Sequence record: OK905446.1
Length of the DNA stretch: 64,000 nucleotides
Reading direction: 5' to 3' (one strand)
The translations under genes were made by a program, and so were the position numbers. Of the stretch, positions 1,404 through 28,481 are shown one piece after another (within the stretch, counting starts at the first letter, position 1; each line of letters opens with the position of its first letter). The notes under the pieces were generated by a model. The model had not been told where the DNA came from. It saw nothing but the letters and a program-made list of their open reading frames with translations, and made no database searches.

Positions 1404-1492
1404 GGAGATATGGTCTAATGGTATGACAGCACCCTGCTAAGGTGTCGGACGTTAATAGCGTTCTCTGGGTTCGACTCCCAGTATCTCCGCCA
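1404..1492 (+). tRNA. tRNA-Ser(GCT)
   Basis: Acceptor GGAGATA/TATCTCC, anticodon loop CTGCTAA, long variable arm, discriminator G, CCA. Confidence 0.95.
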
Positions 1493-1499
1493 AATTCGC

Positions 1500-1766
1500 A
1501 ATAAGACATTGTACAGCAACTATTACTAATCAAAGAAGCAAACTTTAATAGTAATGAGGCGCACTAGCTGCTTTCTCAGTGATGACGTGAGCCCGGCGCA
1601 TTCTCGTGGTAGGAAATGGCCATTAAGACGGTGTTCGTACTGTTAAACGAAATAGGTCTCATGCCGAATCATGGGTATTCTCTTGATGAGAAACATCGAG
1701 ATAGTCAATTGAGATTTAAGGAAAAGACGATAAAACAATTCTCGAATGTCTGTGTATTGCACATCT
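1500..1766 (+). ncRNA. candidate structured ncRNA at the 3' end of the tRNA transcript
   Basis: No ORF; hairpins 1575-1578/1588-1591, 1634-1638/1647-1651, 1658-1663/1670-1675, 1681-1688/1694-1701; ends at a terminator; starts with the GACATTGTACAGCAA motif. Confidence 0.5.
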
Positions 1767-1791
1767 AAACCTGCCTTGAGCAGGTTTTTTT
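1767..1791 (+). terminator. intrinsic terminator ending the tRNA array
   Basis: AAACCTGC-CTTGA-GCAGGTTT followed by a T run. Confidence 0.85.
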
Positions 1792-1844
1792 GTTTATGGC
1801 GTTTGACAAATCGTGTAATCTGAGAATAAACAACGGGAGATCAC

Positions 1845-2222
1845 ATGTTGGTTAGTAATACAAAACGAGTTTCAATTTACAAGATGAAGCGTGTAGCTAG
1901 AATGCCTGATGCTGATGTATTCTTTCAAATGAGCCAATACGAGCATTTGAACAATAACAGCGTCAAGATTACCAATAAACTGACAGCATTCATCATACGA
2001 GGTCTATTTATTTACAGAACCGTCGTAGACTGTTCTCAAGCTGATGACCCTCATACTATGTGCGAACGACTTGAATTCGTCTCACAAGACGCTCTAAAGC
2101 GTTATATGAACATGAGTGGTAGACGTAAGCGATTCAGTTTAGACGATGTGCTATACGGGAATGAACAATGCGCATTCAATAAAGAAATCGGATTGGCAAT
2201 AACTTACTCTAGGCTATTCTAA
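1845..2222 (+). CDS. hypothetical protein
   Basis: 125-aa ORF with GGGAG RBS. Confidence 0.6.
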   Translation: MLVSNTKRVSIYKMKRVARMPDADVFFQMSQYEHLNNNSVKITNKLTAFIIRGLFIYRTVVDCSQADDPHTMCERLEFVSQDALKRYMNMSGRRKRFSLDDVLYGNEQCAFNKEIGLAITYSRLF

Positions 2223-2255
2223 ATACAGTTGAACTCAAACAATTGGAGATAGGTC

Positions 2256-2459
2256 ATGAGTGATAAAACCTTTGACAAATTCATGTCAGAATTAGAAGAA
2301 TCTCGTCCTGAAGACAAGAAGAAAAAACGTTCCATTAAAGACCGTGTAAAGTCTGGGGCAAAAAAAGCTGGTAAAGCAGCAAAGACAGGCGCTAAAGTTG
2401 CAGGTGGTGTAGCAGCGGCTGGTTTAGTAAGACAAGTAACAAAGAAATCTAACGAATAA
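2256..2459 (+). CDS. small basic protein, putative internal head protein
   Basis: GGAG/AGG RBS; N-terminus MSDKTFDKFMSELEE resembles a capsid-targeting sequence; Lys/Ala/Gly-rich. Confidence 0.65.
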   Translation: MSDKTFDKFMSELEESRPEDKKKKRSIKDRVKSGAKKAGKAAKTGAKVAGGVAAAGLVRQVTKKSNE

Positions 2460-2686
2460 TGAGCATTCACAGTAAATCGCACGCACGCGAAGGTCGTGGT
2501 CTAGGCAACGGTTTTAACGATAACTGGCGCAATAGTCCGCTTTGGAAAAACATCGGTCCCGACGCTCGTAAAAAAGACGAAGCAGGTGAAGAACCGAAAG
2601 AAGAGATCAAAGAGGTGAAGACGGAAAATTTAGATGAACTGACAGAACGCGAACGTATGCGCCGTTTGATGAGTCTAGCACACTAA
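2459..2686 (+). CDS. hypothetical protein
   Basis: TAATG coupling to the upstream ORF. Confidence 0.65.
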   Translation: MSIHSKSHAREGRGLGNGFNDNWRNSPLWKNIGPDARKKDEAGEEPKEEIKEVKTENLDELTERERMRRLMSLAH

Positions 2687-2711
2687 CCTCATATTGGCGT
2701 AACTTCTCGGT

Positions 2712-2757
2712 GGGAGATATGTGGTCAAGGCAATGGGTTCGATTCCCGTGTCTCCCG
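2712..2757 (+). other. tRNA-like minihelix (acceptor stem + T arm; no D stem, anticodon arm or CCA)
   Basis: GGGAGAT/GTCTCCC acceptor, ATGGG-TTCGATT-CCCGT T arm, 14-nt linker with TGGTC; resembles both ends of tRNA-Ser at 1404. Confidence 0.65.
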
Positions 2758-2785
2758 TATTCTATTAACTAAGAGGTGAACAATC

Positions 2786-2998
2786 ATGGAAATTCTTTCT
2801 GAATCCACACTAAAAAGCATGGAACTATCTGAAGTTTGCAAAGTACGCAAAGCACTTAATAAATTTATTGCACGTCTGCGCAAAGATTTTCGACAATTTC
2901 AATGCACCCGAGTTGATGAGAAATATTACAAAGAGCATCTTATGTACTCCACGATTGTAGATCGAATGATCGAACACAAGTTACGCCATTCACACTAA
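2786..2998 (+). CDS. hypothetical protein
   Basis: GAGGTG RBS, 70 aa. Confidence 0.7.
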   Translation: MEILSESTLKSMELSEVCKVRKALNKFIARLRKDFRQFQCTRVDEKYYKEHLMYSTIVDRMIEHKLRHSH

Positions 2999-2999
2999 C

Positions 3000-3030
3000 A
3001 AAAAAGCCCCAATTAAGGGGCTTTTCTTTT
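3000..3030. terminator. bidirectional intrinsic terminator
   Basis: AAAAAAGCCCC-AATTAA-GGGGCTTTT between convergent genes. Confidence 0.85.
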
Positions 3031-3400
3031 ATAACTTCTGCCTGATCATTAGATCATGAAGACCTTCAACGGCAAAGTCGTTGAGTCTATCAAGCTCTAG
3101 ATCCAGTTTGTCCATTGCTTGAACTAGCTCTTCGCTGATACCTTTCTTATAACGAAGCTTGTGAATCAAGCGTTTCGCGTCGAGAACATTCATTTTGATG
3201 TGCTCGAAATTGTATCTCACGACTTCATAACGGTACTTGTTTTGCTTGGCTTTCTGTTCAATGTGCAGAAGCTTGGTATGCATTTTAGCAAGACGCTTGA
3301 TACTGCGAGTGTCTTCACCTGCTTTATATCTTGCCCATTGCCTTTCAAACCACCCTTCATTTAGATATTCATCAAAAGAAATAATTTTTTCGTCTAACAT
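3029..3400 (-). CDS. putative internal head protein
   Basis: Likely start MLDEKIISFDEYLNE (capsid-targeting-like); GATAAATA late-like box at 3432-3439. Confidence 0.6.
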   Translation of the reverse strand: MLDEKIISFDEYLNEGWFERQWARYKAGEDTRSIKRLAKMHTKLLHIEQKAKQNKYRYEVVRYNFEHIKMNVLDAKRLIHKLRYKKGISEELVQAMDKLDLELDRLNDFAVEGLHDLMIRQKL

Positions 3401-3450
3401 GTTGACTTCCACTTGATAATCCTGTATTCTGTATTTATCAGTCCGAACTA

Positions 3451-3813
3451 ATGAGAATTATCATGTACATTATGATTGATGATGAGCGCAACATTAACAA
3501 CTTCACGAATGAAACTGTTCGTGATGATGAAAAGATGACGTTGCGCACATTTGAAGAAGGCATGACATTCGTCAAGCACACTAATTTAACCGACATTACG
3601 TTATTCATGGATAATGACTTAGGTGATGTCGTAGGTCGTGAGGGTTACGATATTCTCTCACATGCAATCGACCATAGCAATTTCCCTAAGACTGTTGTTA
3701 TAGTCACCAACAACCCATCTGCTCGATTTAAAATGTGTATGATGCTAAATCAAACGCAGAAGTACAAGCAAGTTGGTTCGATTTTCATGAGGTATGATAC
3801 ATGTCGCACGTAA
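3451..3813 (+). CDS. cyclic-phosphate-processing receiver-like domain protein (cREC_REC-like)
   Basis: Motifs IDDERN, RTFEE, MDNDLG, EGYDIL, VTNNPSA match the stand-alone receiver family linked to RNA repair neighbourhoods. Confidence 0.65.
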   Translation: MRIIMYIMIDDERNINNFTNETVRDDEKMTLRTFEEGMTFVKHTNLTDITLFMDNDLGDVVGREGYDILSHAIDHSNFPKTVVIVTNNPSARFKMCMMLNQTQKYKQVGSIFMRYDTCRT

Positions 3814-4169
3814 ATGTGATCTCTTCTGCTGCGAATGCAATTCGCGTAACTCTACCTAATGGCGACGTGCGTGAAGTCGTTGTTGCCGATAGCTGTCACT
3901 TCGGTCGTAACATGCAATCAGTATTCAAGGTCATCAAAGAACTTGGTGGCACAATTGAGCACCGATATGAACTAGGTGATCGCGGTCAGGGATTTATTAA
4001 CTACTGCGGTGAATATTTCAATCGTGCAGACGCATATGAGATTGCGAAAGAATGCGGTCAACCGTTTAACGACAACTATACGTTGCCTGATAATGATGGT
4101 GATGGTCGCTTGCGCCTTGACAGTTCATGTATTCGCCACTTTGACAATTCGATTAAGGATTATGTATGA
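3801..4169 (+). CDS. conserved phage hypothetical protein
   Basis: QGFIN...YFNRADAYEIA motif; overlaps both neighbours. Confidence 0.7.
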   Translation: MSHVNVISSAANAIRVTLPNGDVREVVVADSCHFGRNMQSVFKVIKELGGTIEHRYELGDRGQGFINYCGEYFNRADAYEIAKECGQPFNDNYTLPDNDGDGRLRLDSSCIRHFDNSIKDYV

Positions 4170-4504
4170 CCAAGTTATACGATACATTAGTTAGTAAAGT
4201 CGCACAGAATCGTTCAACACGCGAAGAAATGTTTGTTGTTGAACTGCACAAAGCAATAGAGCGAAAAATTGGCGGCGTTCAGGGATTTTCTTTCCCTATT
4301 AGCATTCAAGTTCAATTGCAACGTAATGAATGTTGTGATGAAATGATGACTCTAATACGCGAAGTTCTGAAGAAAGAAGGGTTTCATAACTTCGACTCGC
4401 AATTTGGTCATTACAATGGCGATCCGCGTGATATGCGCGACTACTCATACTCGTATGTGAAAATCACAATCCGAGAAAACACAAAAGCGGGGTTTCAGTC
4501 ATGA
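4166..4504 (+). CDS. hypothetical protein
   Basis: ATGA overlap; weakly similar in layout to 4501-4818. Confidence 0.7.
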   Translation: MTKLYDTLVSKVAQNRSTREEMFVVELHKAIERKIGGVQGFSFPISIQVQLQRNECCDEMMTLIREVLKKEGFHNFDSQFGHYNGDPRDMRDYSYSYVKITIRENTKAGFQS

Positions 4505-4818
4505 TTAACCACAATGAATTGCGCGTTCAAATTCAAGAGCGCGAAGTTGAACTAAAACGTACTCTATCCGAGCATTACACCAAAGAATGTGAAAAAGAGT
4601 TTATGCACGCTGTCGAATCAGAATCTAACTTTCCGATTAAGATCAAGGTGCAGATTCACGCAGCCGACAAAGACAAGCGTGGTGCGACTATCATTCGTTC
4701 ATTCTTCGAAGAGCATGGTTATCGTTCACTTCGTACATCGTACGAAACAGGCGGCAGCGTACTTGTTGAGATTTACGAGAATGGTACTAACTTGACTCGG
4801 CATCACAATTACAAATAA
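4501..4818 (+). CDS. hypothetical protein
   Basis: ATGA overlap with upstream ORF. Confidence 0.7.
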   Translation: MINHNELRVQIQEREVELKRTLSEHYTKECEKEFMHAVESESNFPIKIKVQIHAADKDKRGATIIRSFFEEHGYRSLRTSYETGGSVLVEIYENGTNLTRHHNYK

Positions 4819-4830
4819 ATTCAAAAAAGT

Positions 4831-4859
4831 GTTTACACGGGTTCAAATCCGTGTATAAT
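4831..4859 (+). promoter_or_regulatory. early sigma70-type promoter with a palindromic spacer
   Basis: GTTTAC-N17-TATAAT (T4 early consensus), A-tract UP element; TACACGG/CCGTGTA inverted repeat in the spacer. Confidence 0.8.
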
Positions 4860-4909
4860 CATCACATCAAAACGACATTATACAGCAATTTAATATGAGG
4901 AAATCAACA

Positions 4910-6346
4910 ATGTCAGCATTTATGAACGCTATGCAATCAAACGATTCACGTACAGCAAACGGTGCACTTACTCACAGCACTTCAAGCAACGAGTGTCTAA
5001 ACTTGTTCTTCGGTATTGCTGCTATGCGTGGCAACGATCAGTCTAAAACTCTGTTCAGTCGTGCGTTTGCAGAAAACCCAGAACTAGCGACTCGCATCCT
5101 GCTATGGTCTCGTGACGTTCGCGGTGGCGCAGGTGAACGTGGTACTTTCCGTACTCTATTCGCTAAACTTTGTAATGAACAGCCAGACGTTGCTCGTGCT
5201 GTAATGTCAAAAGTACCAGAATTGGGTCGTTTCGATGACTTGATTGTTGCATTCGGTACTAGTCTTGAAAAAGACGCGATCACTATGTGGTCAAATGCGA
5301 TTGTCAATGACAAAAACGGTCTTGCTGCGAAGTGGTTCCCGCGTGAAAACAGCAAAAACGGTCATGTGTTCAAGCGCACAATCAAGTCTCTTGATGTGAC
5401 TGCAAAGCAGTGGCGTAAGATTCTTGCTCTTTTGTCTGACACCGTTGAACAAAAGATGTGTGCTCAAGAATGGGATGCAATCGACTTCGGTAAGTTGCCT
5501 TCTGTAGCGTCTGCTCGTTATCAACAAGCATTCGGTCGTAACGCTTCGACACGTTACACAAGCTACATCGAATCACTTCAAAAAGGTGAAGCGAAGATCA
5601 ACGCTGCTGCATTGTTCCCATACGATGTTGTTAAAAGCGTTAGTCACGGTAACGCATCTGTAGCGAATGAGCAATGGAAAGCTCTACCGAACTACATGGA
5701 AGGTTCTGATGAGCGCATCATCCCTGTTGTAGACGTGTCTGGTTCTATGAGCACGCCGATCAACGCAGGTACTGACCGTTCAGGCGTGTCTTGTAAGCAA
5801 GTTGCAATGTCTCTAGGCATCTACGTTGCTGAACGAAACGAAGGCATCTTCAAAGACCAGTTCATTTCGTTCTCAAGTGATCCGCACTTCCACCAGTTGC
5901 GCGGTAGCTCTCTTAAAGAGCGTCTTGACAACATGAATCGCTCAGGCGAAGACATGAGCACTAACATCACCAAGTGTTTCAGCGTTCTATTAGAACGTGC
6001 GAAGAAGGCAAACCTTTCACAAGAAGAAATGCCAACTAAGTTGCTTATCATGAGCGACATGGAATTCGACGAAGCAAATCGCGGTGGTGGTTGGTATGGT
6101 CGCGGCGAAATTACTAATTTCGAAGCAATCAAAGGCATGTACGCACGTGCAGGCTATGAAATGCCTCAACTAGTGTTCTGGAACATCCGTGGTCGTATCG
6201 GTAACGTTCCTGTTAAGTCAGGCGAAGCGGGTACAGCGTTGGTTTCAGGTTGTAGTCCATCAATCTTGACTTCATTGTTGGGTGGTGAACTTGAGCCAGT
6301 CAAGATCATGCTGAAAACTGTATGCGTTGATCGCTACAGCTTTTAA
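4910..6346 (+). CDS. DUF2828-family TROVE/Ro60-like helical domain plus vWA domain protein
   Basis: TANGA, RDVRGGAGER, GRFDDL, AAKWFPRE, INAAALFPYD, MIDAS DVSGS, SDMEFD and VFWN motifs; RBS GAGG favours start 4910. Confidence 0.85.
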   Translation: MSAFMNAMQSNDSRTANGALTHSTSSNECLNLFFGIAAMRGNDQSKTLFSRAFAENPELATRILLWSRDVRGGAGERGTFRTLFAKLCNEQPDVARAVMSKVPELGRFDDLIVAFGTSLEKDAITMWSNAIVNDKNGLAAKWFPRENSKNGHVFKRTIKSLDVTAKQWRKILALLSDTVEQKMCAQEWDAIDFGKLPSVASARYQQAFGRNASTRYTSYIESLQKGEAKINAAALFPYDVVKSVSHGNASVANEQWKALPNYMEGSDERIIPVVDVSGSMSTPINAGTDRSGVSCKQVAMSLGIYVAERNEGIFKDQFISFSSDPHFHQLRGSSLKERLDNMNRSGEDMSTNITKCFSVLLERAKKANLSQEEMPTKLLIMSDMEFDEANRGGGWYGRGEITNFEAIKGMYARAGYEMPQLVFWNIRGRIGNVPVKSGEAGTALVSGCSPSILTSLLGGELEPVKIMLKTVCVDRYSF

Positions 6347-6395: not shown

Positions 6396-6914
6396 ATGTT
6401 CGATTGGGAAGCAATAGAAACAGCTATCAATAACAGTCACCCGAATAGTACGATCTATGTCGGGTGTGATAGCAAGCGTAAGAGTGATATGATCAGTTAC
6501 GCTACTGTAATCATCATTCACCTTGAGGGTAGTAAAGGCGCTCAAGTATTCAAAACTATCGAAACAGAACCTGCTTACATGTCTTGTAAAGACGGTATTC
6601 GAAGTCGTTTGATGAATGAAGTATACAAAGCTGGTGAGACTGCATTGCGAGTCAAACCAATGTGTGGCCCTCGCGGGTTTGAAGTTCACGTTGACATCAA
6701 CCCTGACCCGTCACATCGTTCTCACATTGCGTATAACGAAGCTAAAGGGACTATCTTGGGATATGTGGGTCAAGAGCCCGTATTCAAGCCCGATGCGTTC
6801 GCAGCGTCTTGTGCAGCGGATTATGACGCGGTGCGCCGTGCTGATAAAATAGCAAAACGAAAAGAACTGCGAAGAGCGAAGCGAAAAGCCAATAAAGCAA
6901 ATCGTAGAAAATAG
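6396..6914 (+). CDS. YkuK/DUF458 ribonuclease H-like protein with a basic C-terminal tail
   Basis: YVGCDS, YATVIIIH, EVHVDIN, KPDAFAASCAAD motifs; GAGGTG RBS before ATG 6396. Confidence 0.75.
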   Translation: MFDWEAIETAINNSHPNSTIYVGCDSKRKSDMISYATVIIIHLEGSKGAQVFKTIETEPAYMSCKDGIRSRLMNEVYKAGETALRVKPMCGPRGFEVHVDINPDPSHRSHIAYNEAKGTILGYVGQEPVFKPDAFAASCAADYDAVRRADKIAKRKELRRAKRKANKANRRK

Positions 6915-25121: not shown

Positions 25122-26246
25122 TTACACCTCTAACGTTTTTAGGAATTCAGGGCGTACAGTTGAATCAATTTGACCAACTAGGTACGAACTAAGTTCAGCT
25201 TCTTGCGCTGCCACTTGTACTGAATCACTATTTAGCCACTTGCGAATCCATGGCAATGGGTGCTTACGACGAGGGTATGGGCTATTCAAACCAACCGAAC
25301 GCATACGACTATCAGCTAGGTATTCAACGTATTCACTTAGAATCTGAGCATTAAGACCTGGAACTGTGCCTTGAGCAAACAGTGAGTGTGCCCACTCTTT
25401 CTCTTGCTCAACAACTTGCATGAAAATCTTTTCAGCTTCTGATTGAAGTCGAAGAGAAATTTCTGCCATTTCTGGGTCATCTTTGTAGTTTTGCCAGATG
25501 GTGATAAGTGCTTGAGTACCTTTTAGGTGAAGCTGTTCATCACGAGCAATCAGTTTCATTACTTTCGCGTTGCCTTCCATAATACCTTGCTCTGCAAAGT
25601 TGAAAGTACATGCGAATGAAACATAGAAACGAATTGCTTCAAGTGCGTTTACTGCGTGCATACACAAGTAAAGTGCTTCTTTAACTGCACTTTCTTGCAT
25701 AAGAAAGTGAGCTTCGTCAAGATTCATCGTTTTAAGCTGGTTAAGCTTTTGCGTTTCAGAAATCAGTTTGTCATAATGCTCAGTAACTGCTTCAGCACGA
25801 GCCATGATTGACTTGTCGAGTACGATTTCGTCAAACACCGCACTTGGGTTTGAATACAAGTTACGCATGATGTGCGTGTAAGAACGACTGTGAATGGTTT
25901 CACTGAAGTCCCACGTCGTGATCCAGTTTTCAAGCGAGTTGTCACTACAGATAGGCAAGAATGCGATATTAGGCGCACGACCTTGCACAGAGTCTAGCAG
26001 TGATTGATATTTCAGGTTTTGCGTGAACACGTGTTTCCAGTGCTCAGGCATTCGATCAAATTCTTGAGAGTCAAGAGTCAAATCGACTTCTTCTGGTCGC
26101 CAGAAGAAAGAAAGTTGTTTTTCAGTAAGCTGTTCGAATACACCGTGCTTAACAGTTTCGAATCGAGAAATGTTTGGGTCTTCGCCCAAGAAAAGAGGTT
26201 GACCAAGATGGTCAACCTTATTTTTATTGAAAATCGTTTTAGACAT
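25122..26246 (-). CDS. nrdB: class Ia ribonucleotide reductase beta subunit
   Basis: FFWRPEEVDL, ETIHSRSY, LEAIRFYVSF, ARDEQLH; no intron seen. Confidence 0.97.
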   Translation of the reverse strand: MSKTIFNKNKVDHLGQPLFLGEDPNISRFETVKHGVFEQLTEKQLSFFWRPEEVDLTLDSQEFDRMPEHWKHVFTQNLKYQSLLDSVQGRAPNIAFLPICSDNSLENWITTWDFSETIHSRSYTHIMRNLYSNPSAVFDEIVLDKSIMARAEAVTEHYDKLISETQKLNQLKTMNLDEAHFLMQESAVKEALYLCMHAVNALEAIRFYVSFACTFNFAEQGIMEGNAKVMKLIARDEQLHLKGTQALITIWQNYKDDPEMAEISLRLQSEAEKIFMQVVEQEKEWAHSLFAQGTVPGLNAQILSEYVEYLADSRMRSVGLNSPYPRRKHPLPWIRKWLNSDSVQVAAQEAELSSYLVGQIDSTVRPEFLKTLEV

Positions 26247-26255
26247 CTATCTACC

Positions 26256-28481
26256 TTAAACCTTGCAACCGTCACAGTCTTCCCCGTCTTCAGTGCCGTC
26301 AGCACCGTCACGAGTGTTAGAATAGTAAAGAGTTTTGATACCGTAATGGCTACAGAACGCTAGTTCTTCGAAAATACGTTCCATCGGGATCTTACCATTA
26401 GGGAACTTTGATGGATCATAGTATTGGTTTGCTGAAATACTTTGATCAACAAACTTCTGCATGATTGCAACTAGCGTTAGATAACCGAAGTTATCTCGTT
26501 CACACACTTTCCACGCAAGACCGTATTCGTCTTTCAGCAAATCAACTTCAGGCACAACTTGGTTGAATACCCCGTCTTTTGACTGCTTAGTTGACACTAG
26601 ACCACGTGGCGGCTCAATGCCGTTCGTGCTGTTACTAATCTGAGAACTACTTTCACATGGCATGAAAGCGGAAGTTGTATCATTTCGCATACCGTAACGA
26701 ATAACGTCAGCGCGAAGTGCTTCCCATTCTAGATTATAATTCGGTTTAACAAGCTTATCAACATTTTTGTTGTACCAGTCAATTGGCAATTGACCTTTCG
26801 CCCATCGTGTCTTACGATGCAACTTGTTCGCGCCACGTTCTTTAGCTAGATGCATTGATGCTTGAATGTTGTAGTAAGACATTGCTTCCATCCATTCATG
26901 CACAAGATATTTAGCTGAAGCATCATACCCAACAAAGTTCTTAGCTAAGAAATACGCAAAGTTAGTGATACCAACACCCAATGCACGTCTGAATTTCGCC
27001 TTCTCAGCGGCTTCTACTGGATAATCTTGGTAATCAAGTAGATTGTCAAGCGCACGCATAACGATTGGAGCAAGCTTCGCGAATTCACTTGGTGATTCGA
27101 TTGCACCTAAGTTGTATGCTGCAAGTGTACAAAGCGCGATCTCTTCGTCTGCTGTACCAAGTGGGTACGTCGGAAGCGCGATTTCCATACACAAGTTCGA
27201 TTGCTTGATCGCTTCGATGTATGGCGACTGTGCATTCAAGTTGTCAACAAAGATCGGGTAGATACGACCAGTACCTGCACGCTCTTGACCAAACATACTG
27301 AATAGCTCAGTTGCTTTGATGCGTTTCTTGCGAACTTTCGGGTCAGCTTCTAGCTCAAGATACAGCCTTTCGAACTGTTCTGGGTTTGTGTGATATTCAC
27401 CATATAGAGCACCGTGACGTTCGTCAGGGCTGAACAGTGTGATGTAGTCGTTATCAACAAGACGTTGCATCATCAATCGACTGATTGAAACGCTGTAGTC
27501 TAGATGACGAATACGGTTTTCTTCAACACCTTTGTTGTTCTTCAGTACAAGCAGTTTTTCAACTTCTAAGTGCCAAATCGGGTAAGTCAACGTCGCAGCA
27601 CCACCACGTACGCCACCTTGAGAACACGATTTAACCGCAGTCTGAAAGTGTTTCCAGAATGGAATTACGCCAGTGTGACGAATTTCACCTGCTCGAACGA
27701 CTGAACCCTCAGCACGAATAGCACCACCATTCACACCAATACCTGCGCGTTTGCTGATGTAATCAACGATTGCTTCAGATACTTTGTTAATCGAACGTAG
27801 AGAGTCACCCGATTCGATTTTAACACACGAGCTAAATTGACGTGTCGGGGTACGAACGCCTGCCATGATCGGTGTTGGTAGTGAAAGTTTCTGAGTTGAA
27901 ACCGCGTTGTAGAAGTCAACAACGTGTTTGATTCTATCGTATTTCTCTTCTTGGTGTAGACACATAGCAATTAGCATATAAGCGTATTGCGGTGTTTCGT
28001 AGATTGCACCAGTACCACGGTTTTTACACAAGTACTTTTCTTTGAACTGCATCACGCCAGCGTATGCGAATTCAAAATCTCGCTCGTGTTGAATAAGAGA
28101 TTCGATATATTCTAGCTCGTCGTCAGACCATTTCTGAAGAATTTCAGGGTCATACACGCCGATGGCTGTGTTTTTCTCGATAAGTTGTTTGAATGGAATA
28201 GGGTCGAACTGACCATATACATCTTTGCGAAGACCATACATAGCAAGACGAGCCGAAACATATTGATAGTCTGGCTCGTCTACTGAAATGCTATCGGCAG
28301 CGATTTTGATCGCTGCCTTTTGAATGTCTTTGCTCGTCATACCGTCGCTAAGTTGAGCTTTAACGCGGTCAAGTAGTTGATGCGGATCGACTGTGGTGTT
28401 TTTACAAGCGTCTGCTAAAACGCGCATCAATTTACTTTCTTCAAATTCTTCTGTAATGCCAGAAGACTTCACTACAAGCAT
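26256..28481 (-). CDS. nrdA: class Ia ribonucleotide reductase alpha subunit with ATP cone
   Basis: VVKSSG ATP cone, PTPIMAG, FSSCV, SNLCMEI, MPCESSS, C-terminal CDGCKV. Confidence 0.97.
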   Translation of the reverse strand: MLVVKSSGITEEFEESKLMRVLADACKNTTVDPHQLLDRVKAQLSDGMTSKDIQKAAIKIAADSISVDEPDYQYVSARLAMYGLRKDVYGQFDPIPFKQLIEKNTAIGVYDPEILQKWSDDELEYIESLIQHERDFEFAYAGVMQFKEKYLCKNRGTGAIYETPQYAYMLIAMCLHQEEKYDRIKHVVDFYNAVSTQKLSLPTPIMAGVRTPTRQFSSCVKIESGDSLRSINKVSEAIVDYISKRAGIGVNGGAIRAEGSVVRAGEIRHTGVIPFWKHFQTAVKSCSQGGVRGGAATLTYPIWHLEVEKLLVLKNNKGVEENRIRHLDYSVSISRLMMQRLVDNDYITLFSPDERHGALYGEYHTNPEQFERLYLELEADPKVRKKRIKATELFSMFGQERAGTGRIYPIFVDNLNAQSPYIEAIKQSNLCMEIALPTYPLGTADEEIALCTLAAYNLGAIESPSEFAKLAPIVMRALDNLLDYQDYPVEAAEKAKFRRALGVGITNFAYFLAKNFVGYDASAKYLVHEWMEAMSYYNIQASMHLAKERGANKLHRKTRWAKGQLPIDWYNKNVDKLVKPNYNLEWEALRADVIRYGMRNDTTSAFMPCESSSQISNSTNGIEPPRGLVSTKQSKDGVFNQVVPEVDLLKDEYGLAWKVCERDNFGYLTLVAIMQKFVDQSISANQYYDPSKFPNGKIPMERIFEELAFCSHYGIKTLYYSNTRDGADGTEDGEDCDGCKV

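Follow-up and report, generated by a model that had tools for sequence, protein, structure and literature searches.

Vibrio phage VS1 (OK905446.1), a KVP40-like phage of the genus Schizotequatrovirus, carries two copies of a 15-nt motif on one strand, the first beyond the last gene of a tRNA cluster and the second in the mRNA leader of a gene for a Ro60-like protein of the DUF2828 family (hereafter the Ro-like gene and protein). We propose, with a probability of roughly 0.6, that the motif is the 5′ half of an RNA module that sits on the partner RNAs of the Ro-like protein and has been reused as a translational operator on the protein’s own mRNA. The window analyzed here is a stretch of 64 kb starting at about position 124,001 of the VS1 record, and coordinates refer to it unless a locus number (L) is given. 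An initial annotation of this DNA had suggested that one RNA site is common to a non-coding RNA (ncRNA) and to the leader of the DUF2828 gene, thereby linking the RNA with the protein; this suggestion now has strong comparative support, from the recurrence of the module, its co-occurrence with the gene, the leader mini-units of other lineages and the Ro60 fold of the protein.

Two conserved copies of one motif

Copy 1 (GACATTGTACAGCAA) and copy 2 (GACATTATACAGCAA) lie where the initial annotation had placed them, 12 nt after tRNA-Ser and between the promoter and the ribosome-binding site of the Ro-like gene, respectively (Table 1), and they are the only matches to the 15-mer in the 64 kb when up to two mismatches are allowed. 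Shuffled windows contain a mean of 0.29 matches, with two or more in 4 of 100 shuffles (p ~0.04), so that the pair on its own is only modestly significant. The copies become meaningful through their conservation in relatives amid drifting flanks. In a comparison with 13 KVP40-like phages (76–98% identity to VS1), copy 1 was unchanged in 12 relatives, and phage 1.081.O carries GACATTTTTCAGCAA. Conservation in orthologous leaders, which had been named beforehand as a check on the motif, was found for copy 2: it is retained as GACATT-NN-ACAGCAA in 10 of 12, that is, in all KVP40-like relatives possessing this leader, and the bases around it, from the -10 box to the motif and from the motif to the Shine-Dalgarno sequence (SD), vary in both sequence and length.

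These data bear on another account of the pair, namely that the copies match by chance or are neutral remains of a tRNA trailer that was duplicated, which we consider most improbable. The shuffle frequency of the pair alone would allow for it, and the VS1 and KVP40 copies both follow a hairpin of the GGTTC type at a similar distance; yet the motif is conserved while its flanks diverge, the T-arm-like sequence of the promoter spacer is not kept in ValKK3 or K575, and the module recurs with covariation across many loci (see below), comparative data that contradict this reading. The idea of a trailer duplication, which had come from that T-arm-like spacer, was dropped, as the spacer keeps its palindromic character and not its sequence. 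The initial annotation had also pointed to a recurrence of TACAGCAA inside the gene at 4951–4958. The sequence is indeed present, but its relevance did not hold up: it is coding, representing the codons Thr15-Ala-Asn17, of which Thr15 and Asn17 are invariant in the protein family, and no partner helix was found for it, for which reasons we treat it as coincidental and dropped it as a further RNA site.

The long RNA unit behind the tRNA cluster

The 15-mer can be divided into three parts, namely the 5′ strand of a helix (GACAUU), two free bases and an invariant ACAGCAA. The GACATT of copy 1 at 1505 is complemented exactly by AATGTC at 1745–1750, and that of copy 2 at 4874 by AATGTC at 4909–4914, a segment that includes the start codon of the Ro-like gene; a paralogous unit higher in the VS1 tRNA cluster has the helix GACAAT/ATTGTC. 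Consensus folding of ten KVP40-like sequences with RNAalifold gave two helices for the region of copy 1, an inner one at 1504–1510/1745–1751 and an outer one at 1498–1503/1755–1760, and single-sequence folds recovered the closing helix in all cases. Compensatory changes are seen in the outer helix (GC to UA in three sequences and CG to AU in one), which in phage 1.081.O reads GUAAAU/AUUUAC. The inner helix covaries over paralogous and cross-lineage units, with the pairs ATT/AAT, AAT/ATT, CAA/TTG, CGT/ACG, TAG/CTA and others. The unit thus delimited begins 5 nt beyond the CCA of tRNA-Ser(GCU), and the motif, which had been described as the 5′ end of an ncRNA, does lie within one but not at its very end, as the outer helix strand at 1498–1503 precedes it.

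The open reading frame (ORF) at 1616–1768 is frameshifted or missing among the relatives, and we therefore regard the region after tRNA-Ser as non-coding. Rfam returned no match to tRNA, YrlA or any other family within 1493–1795. The long unit (1498–1760) probably shares a transcript with the tRNA cluster, one that stops at the intrinsic terminator downstream of the unit, and two more VS1 units are present in the same cluster just to the left of the window (locus L256; Table 1). A pairing of ACAGCAA with a conserved internal block, UAGCUGC, was also considered and dropped, since no covariation was found and K575 has GCCG. Elsewhere in the cluster, the long spacers between tRNA genes at 601–803 and 964–1218 contain neither a convincing ORF nor an ACAGCAA unit and may represent other cluster ncRNAs.

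A module of RNAs encoded beside DUF2828 genes

To look beyond the KVP40-like phages, we used a metagenomic set of 78 viral loci (1.24 Mb) encoding DUF2828 homologues of 46–54% identity. A descriptor demanding GAC at the start of the helix had zero matches in these loci. Locus L245, in which five tandem units follow the DUF2828 gene on its 3′ side, indicates that the GAC start is lineage-specific and that what holds generally is limited to the helix, the spacer and ACAGCAA. The general descriptor (a 6-bp helix, NN, ACAGCAA, a complement within 450 nt, then A, C or U followed by G) gave 109 matches in the 78 loci, of which 108 are on the gene strand, compared with 2–6 in shuffled sequence. Most of these units lie a few hundred bases or less 3′ of the DUF2828 gene, frequently in tandem. 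A test independent of the descriptor showed that 120 of the 214 gene-strand ACAGCAA sites have an exact complement to the hexamer located at a spacer of 2, against a background of about 15% in other registers or on the opposite strand (binomial p = 1e-43). The units contain 48 distinct helix sequences, and the helix starts with a G-C pair in 93% of 140 units and in 20 of 20 aligned short units. In the alignment of these 20 units, five of the six pairs change on both sides (50 cells), which we take as diversity and not as proof of covariation, because the units had been picked by complementarity.

A covariance model built from short units, with no leader in the training set (hereafter R1), added 23 units; every one of them is on the gene strand, and they are spread over 14 of the 28 loci without a strict unit, so that strict and R1 units together are carried by at least 64 of the 78 loci. 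Control loci with TACAGCAA but without a DUF2828 gene, 0.92 Mb in all, yielded two R1 matches at E < 0.01. Co-occurrence was assessed in a separate sample of 159 loci fetched purely by DNA pattern, in which unit and gene were found together in 27, a unit only in 19, a gene only in none, and neither in 113 (Fisher p = 1.7e-18); several of the 19 unit-only loci are incomplete FelixO1-like fragments. Sequenced phages of very different hosts show the same arrangement. The Escherichia coli FelixO1-like phage HY02, with a DUF2828 protein 45% identical to that of VS1, has four units in the tRNA cluster directly 3′ of the gene, with helices such as GACCAA/TTGGTC and GACCGT/ACGGTC and a 3-bp outer helix that covaries perfectly (GAC/GTC, TGC/GCA, AGC/GCT, TAC/GTA). 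Mycobacterium phage MsGreen has three units 3′ of a gene annotated as a ‘Ro-like RNA binding protein’ (Pfam DUF2828 and DUF7788), and Listeria phage LP-125 has three units 5′ of its Ro-like gene. In VS1, the long unit and the Ro-like gene share a strand, with the unit 3.1 kb upstream, whereas units are directly adjacent in other lineages.

It is very likely that the motif belongs to an RNA module that is structured, functional and specific to the RNAs associated with DUF2828. This module would consist of a closing helix of 6–7 bp starting with G, two free bases, a single-stranded ACAGCAA and a UG after the 3′ strand; it would cap a variable body and mark the Y-RNA-like partner RNAs of phage DUF2828/DUF7788 proteins.

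The same data speak to a function at the level of DNA. The reverse complement of the motif, TTGCTGTA[T/C/A]AATGTC, could be read as an extended -10 promoter on the minus strand, its least conserved position coinciding with the variable position of the motif, or the motif could be the target of a homing endonuclease, the gene for such an enzyme being inserted exactly at this leader in two relatives. We hold such readings to be very unlikely, in that the helix of other lineages is wholly changed, with TAnAAT gone and the pairing with a distal complement retained, all but one of the 109 units lie on the gene strand, no conserved -35 element was found, and there is nothing on the minus strand to transcribe. 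The minus-strand promoter was dropped on the strand bias and on the loss of the -10-like sequence in other lineages.

Expression support was sought from Listeria phage CKA15 and dropped as well, as its most-transcribed region corresponds to a ROOL RNA with no unit, and no location could be assigned to its two other regions. The ROOL RNA itself (RF03087, 87 bits, E = 3.5e-16) was found in LP-125 at L257 3471–4022, behind a promoter that is strong, and lies roughly 1 kb 5′ of the Ro-like gene; when coordinates are transferred, it corresponds to the unidentified ‘most transcribed region’ 26,236–26,727 of CKA15 (PMC12282133).

A mini-unit at the start codon of the Ro-like gene

The second copy of the motif forms part of a much smaller unit. 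In the VS1 leader, a mini-unit of 41 nt (4874–4914) encloses the SD in its loop and contains the AUG in its 3′ strand, and the minimum free energy (MFE) fold of the leader forms the GACAUU/AAUGUC stem. R1 finds this leader (4872–4918) with 21.7 bits and E ~0.01, its sole match in the 64-kb window, and scores the leader of K575 at 25.5 bits. The gene has an early promoter with the features of T4-like early promoters (PMC1524935) that is kept in KVP40-like relatives; it would place the transcription start near 4866 and the motif at about +8. An alignment of KVP40-group leaders shows as conserved blocks the -35 and -10 elements, GACATT, ACAGCAA, the SD and AATGTCAG, and the two spacer bases vary as they do in the ncRNA units. 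No Rfam family, RF01414 included, matched the VS1 leader.

The promoter spacer forms a palindrome (4836–4855) whose sequence differs among KVP40-like phages, its pairing being kept by compensatory changes; it was also scored as a terminator-like site on the minus strand. In HY02 (L015 5935–5975), the Ro-like gene has a promoter that overlaps with a palindrome of 8 bp, GACAGACT...AGTCTGTC, extending from -35 to -10, which may be an operator and is no unit of the family described here.

Leader units are also present in independent lineages. The leaders of L056, L061/L063, L065, L066 and L092 have mini-units of 30–31 nt upstream of the DUF2828 ATG, in which the 3′ strand is followed by UG, an SD 0–3 nt later and the ATG 13–18 nt away, and which R1 scores at 29–32 bits. 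A 5-bp variant of the mini-unit is found in the leaders of L080 and L085, a short unit abutting the SD in that of L143, and a full tRNA-like unit abutting the SD in those of L054, L055 and L081. This placement over or beside the SD and AUG, reached independently in several lineages, is why we read the leader copy as a translational operator. Under the proposed mechanism, for which we infer that the RNAs are transcribed and processed, that the protein physically binds them and that regulation runs toward repression, the Ro-like protein would bind the helix and ACAGCAA on its partner RNAs, and protein in excess would occupy the mimic of that site in its own mRNA and keep the 30S subunit from loading, the outcome being autogenous translational repression by molecular mimicry.

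Autogenous operators that mimic a primary RNA site are known for T4 RegA, gp32 and gp43, for L1, S8 and S15, and for E. coli ThrRS. The T4 cases have been reviewed (PMC3014915). As in these systems, a copy of a candidate cognate RNA element is present in the gene’s own 5′ untranslated region (UTR), at the SD and AUG. The placement of the phage element varies between lineages, with the AUG in the stem in VS1 and the SD 2–4 nt past the stem in leaders of the L056 type.

Several observations weigh against the proposal and its regulatory part in particular. The VS1 leader hairpin taken alone is weak (-3.7 kcal/mol), with shuffled sequences folding equally well, and its helix is invariant within the KVP40 group and hence shows no covariation there. 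The AAUGUC strand may be constrained by coding, because it overlaps conserved Met-Ser codons, and the 3′ flank of the unit is AG rather than the usual UG. Units of any kind were not found within the available flanks of at least 14 of the 78 loci and of phage phiAS5, and a leader unit was not found in FelixO1-like phages, in MsGreen or in many metagenomic loci. In VH1_2019 (L008 7678–8313) and D480 (L010 5926–6552), the minus strand carries a homing endonuclease gene inserted immediately upstream of the Ro-like gene; it has replaced the leader unit, of which only TTACAGCAATG, lacking a partner helix, remains, and the protein now begins with the codons for MTS. This insertion is a natural knock-out of the leader element. 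Since the leader unit is missing in many lineages and lost in two KVP40-like phages, autoregulation through it is not essential.

The leader copy might instead serve in a non-repressive way, through cis recruitment of the nascent protein or protection of the mRNA 5′ end, or be the decaying remnant of a full unit. A path from full to mini-unit is made plausible by the full-size or short units in the 5′ UTRs of L054/L055/L081 and L143, and the dispensability of the leader unit in VH1_2019 and D480 would fit as well. However, the helix strand and ACAGCAA are kept where spacer and flanks vary, which indicates selection and not decay, and a position at the SD and AUG in several independent lineages is what an operator predicts. 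We consider these alternatives unlikely, and regard the role of the leader copy as an autogenous translational repressor site as marginally better than an even bet.

The Ro60-like protein and its neighborhood

The VS1 protein matches the Pfam families DUF2828 and DUF7788 only, with no match to the TROVE domain, and a sequence search of PDB did not find Ro60; only the fold search was positive. The AlphaFold (AF2) model of the protein (predicted local distance difference test 84, predicted template modeling score 0.84) aligned over its full length with Ro60 structures, at E ~1e-8 and template modeling scores of 0.5–0.63, the matches being those of Thermus phage phiLo (9KOP, 9L5Y) and Xenopus (1YVR, 1YVP, 2I91). 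As modeled, the protein has the Ro60 fold, with a ring of helical repeats and a C-terminal von Willebrand factor A (vWA) domain with a MIDAS (metal ion-dependent adhesion site), in which D275-x-S277-x-S279 is invariant. DUF2828 ‘RNA-binding’ proteins are found in 711 records of sequenced phages and in thousands of metagenomic proteins, and the hosts of the phages include Listeria, Staphylococcus, Campylobacter, E. coli/Salmonella, Vibrio and Mycobacterium. By analogy with Ro60 and Y RNA, and given the co-occurrence over very different hosts, the Ro-like protein probably binds the module. Ro60 contacts mainly the 5′ strand of the Y RNA terminal stem (PMC4201824).

In VS1, the Ro-like gene is flanked by genes for a cyclic-phosphate processing receiver (cREC) domain and an RNase H-like DUF458 protein (Table 1), and in LP-125 its neighbors encode an RtcB-like ligase and an RNA ligase. 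These neighbors fit a context of RNA repair or processing, in agreement with the published view of phage TROVE systems (PMC7824862). Such a context raises the question whether the module is instead a maturation or processing signal, an option that the initial annotation had also named, for a nuclease or repair enzyme, be it host RNase E, P or Z or the neighboring DUF458 or cREC proteins, with the leader copy serving as an mRNA cleavage site. Units located between tRNAs or abutting genes must be excised, and the conserved positions, a 5′ G and a 3′ C-UG, lie at the unit boundaries, as would be expected; the proximity of RNase H-like and cREC genes in VS1 points the same way. Conserved ends are, however, also predicted by recognition of the Ro-Y RNA type (PMC4201824), DUF458 and cREC genes were not seen adjoining the gene in HY02 or MsGreen, and the only consistent partner of the units is the Ro-like gene. 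With hosts as different as Mycobacterium, Listeria, Vibrio and E. coli, a common specificity of host nucleases is unlikely. We therefore judge a processing signal improbable and retain recognition by the Ro-like protein as the preferred reading.

Two further observations concern the protein itself. In L081 (1652–3687), the Ro-like match spans 2036 nt for 478 aa, implying an insertion of about 600 nt, possibly an intron or intein. The Ro-like protein of CKA15 (CKA15_055) has been detected in purified virions with 57% sequence coverage (PMC12282133); if this is general, virions may package the ribonucleoprotein (RNP) or the protein and deliver it at infection. Apart from these, a tRNA-like minihelix lies between two small ORFs at 2716–2757, with an acceptor-like stem GGGAGA/TCTCCC and a T-arm GGGTTCGATTCCC; it was not called by ARAGORN, and its sole Rfam match is to the 3′ end of tmRNA at 10.9 bits.

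Table 1. Positions of the motif copies, RNA units and associated genes in VS1 (window coordinates, or coordinates of locus L256 where given).
Feature	Position	Strand	Evidence or remark
tRNA-Ser(GCU), last tRNA of the cluster	1404–1492	+	ARAGORN; Rfam tRNA, 58 bits
Long unit, outer helix 5′ strand GCAAUA	1498–1503	+	Pairs with 1755–1760; MFE fold, RNAalifold
Long unit, inner closing helix 5′ strand A+GACAUU	1504–1510	+	Complement at 1745–1751; MFE fold and RNAalifold
Motif copy 1	1505–1519	+	12 nt 3′ of the end of tRNA-Ser(GCU)
Long unit, spacer GU and ACAGCAA	1511–1519	+	Predicted single-stranded; ACAGCAA invariant in all units, spacer varies
Long unit, variable body	1520–1744	+	No conserved ORF or tRNA-like domain detected
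Long unit, inner helix 3′ strand AAUGUC+U, then GUG	1745–1754	+	UG after the helix conserved family-wide
Long unit, outer helix 3′ strand UAUUGC	1755–1760	+	MFE fold and RNAalifold
Intrinsic terminator, 8-bp stem and T run	1767–1794	+	Stem with compensatory changes (RNAalifold)
cREC (cyclic-phosphate processing receiver) domain gene	3451–3810		Flanks the Ro-like gene
T4-type early promoter: A-tract, GTGTTTACA, 16-nt palindromic spacer, GTATAAT	4832–4859	+	11/12 matches (TTTACA, TATAAT)
Motif copy 2	4874–4888	+	Between early promoter and SD of the Ro-like gene
Leader mini-unit, 5′ part: GACAUU, spacer AU, ACAGCAA	4874–4888	+	Alignment; R1
Shine-Dalgarno sequence GAGG	4897–4900	+	Inside the 29-nt loop
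Leader mini-unit, 3′ strand AAUGUC	4909–4914	+	Includes the AUG at 4910–4912
Ro60-like protein gene, 478 aa, DUF2828 and vWA-like DUF7788	4910–6346	+	Pfam E = 1e-28, 5e-46
RNase H-like DUF458 gene	6396–6911		Flanks the Ro-like gene
58-nt Class I-like unit, GTAATC/GATTAC	L256 1673–1730		VS1, left of the window
~211-nt unit, GACAAT/ATTGTC	L256 2867–3078		VS1, left of the window

Relation to Y RNAs and to Dictyostelium Class I RNAs

Y-RNA-like partners of phage Ro60 proteins have been described before, as YrlA RNAs (Rfam RF02553) with Ro60/Rsr in mycobacteriophages (Chen et al., 2014, PMC4201824) and as Yrl1/2 with the Ro60 of Thermus phage phiLo (PMC12135203). The units described here resemble YrlA and Y RNAs in lying on the same strand as the gene of a Ro60-fold protein and within a few kb of it, and in that their 5′ and 3′ ends are predicted to pair in a covarying stem beside a conserved motif on the 5′ strand. 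As in YrlA, the bodies are variable, and long phage units follow the order of YrlA, with a T arm, then an acceptor-like hairpin, then a D arm. Such a tRNA-like domain was found in unit 4 of HY02, in MsGreen, L245, L057 and L067, and the Rfam model of YrlA scores the long units of MsGreen, L245, L057 and L067 at 31–39 bits, below its gathering score of 69; no match to this model was found for the VS1 units.

Differences are equally evident. The phage units conserve NN-ACAGCAA and a 3′ C-UG and not the GNCGAAN0-1G that defines the YrlA motif (PMC4201824) or the GGUCCGA of animal Y RNAs, and the protein is of the DUF2828/DUF7788 type with no Pfam match to TROVE, unlike those of Ro60 systems. Unlike YrlA, the in-window unit of VS1 has no detectable tRNA-like domain, and many phage units are minimal hairpins of 50–65 nt. 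Operator copies in leaders are not described in the Ro/Y literature that we examined.

A match in architecture and sequence signature is offered by the Class I RNAs of Dictyostelium (RF01414), which, according to Kjellin et al. (2021, PMC7919456), occur only in Dictyostelia and have no known function. These are about 56–60 nt long, with (C)CUUACAGCAA right after the 5′ strand, a variable A/U-rich loop and a 3′ end C-UG(U), and their 11-nt motif CCUUACAGCAA has T3, C6, C9, A10 and A11 near-invariant (PMC7919456). Class I RNAs and short phage units are alike in the 6-bp stem joining the ends, in the invariant 5′-most G and in the compensatory changes, and the phage consensus directly after the stem (tT-ACAGCAA, with GU-ACAGCAA and AU-ACAGCAA in VS1) agrees with the Class I motif. 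Earlier studies of Class I RNAs are reportedly those of Aspegren in 2004 and Avesson in 2011. The consensus of the RF01414 model, with a G-initial 6-bp stem and CUU-ACAGCAA followed by a variable loop rich in A/U, then the 3′ strand and UG, equals the architecture of the phage module. The model matches five short phage units over its full length, with scores (24.4–31.8 bits) that fall short of the gathering score, 41.5. Of these matches, four start where the descriptor does (L256:1673, L057:11844, L057:6430 and L064:4727), the fifth being at HY02 7923, and L256:1673 is the 58-nt VS1 unit just outside the window. Short phage units measure 49–65 nt and are followed by UGU or UGG, compared with a Class I range of 42–65 nt and a 3′ C-UGU; the two VS1 units within the window are 263 nt (then UGU) and 41 nt (then AG) long.

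The setting of the two groups differs. Phage units lie beside a Ro-like gene and in tRNA clusters, with phage or tRNA-cluster promoters and no Dictyostelium upstream sequence element (DUSE), whereas the definition of Class I RNAs includes a DUSE promoter about 60 nt upstream (PMC7919456). The sole proven direct binder of Class I RNA is the RRM protein Rnp1A, and the pull-down partners of DdR-21 (preprint) are Rnp1A/CIBP, GuaB, NdkC and the uncharacterized DDB_G0281243. A dictyostelid DUF2828 protein was not found in the literature, and the best 120 homologues are all phage-like, with no taxon-directed search of eukaryotic genomes made. Among eukaryotes, plants for example carry DUF2828 genes. 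Judged from primary sequence and predicted pairing, phage units and Class I RNAs bear a strong resemblance, which may reflect homology or convergence. That the module defines an ancient RNP of a DUF2828-type Ro-like protein and small RNAs, common to phages of Proteobacteria, Firmicutes and Actinobacteria and, via the Class I RNAs, to dictyostelids, is a tentative idea that we regard as doubtful.

Implications for DUF2828 proteins and their RNAs

No RNA partner has been defined for DUF2828 proteins beyond the YrlA predictions in mycobacteriophages. The module described here, a variant of the Ro/Y-RNA kind not described before, provides a simple and testable RNA signature for the partner of this protein, a minimal candidate binding site of about 30–40 nt in the form of the leader mini-units, and a concrete regulatory hypothesis. 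It should also improve phage annotation, because current annotations often place spurious small ORFs in the unit regions. The module joins two classes of RNA that have been treated as unrelated, the Y-RNA-like YrlA and the Dictyostelium Class I RNAs, and this link opens a direct experiment on RNAs that have been orphans for 20 years. If the idea of a common RNP were true, the Class I RNAs, whose function has been unknown since 2004, would be the Y-RNA equivalents of a DUF2828 protein, with DDB_G0281243 as a candidate partner, and the leader copy of VS1 would be the first case in which this RNP controls its own production.

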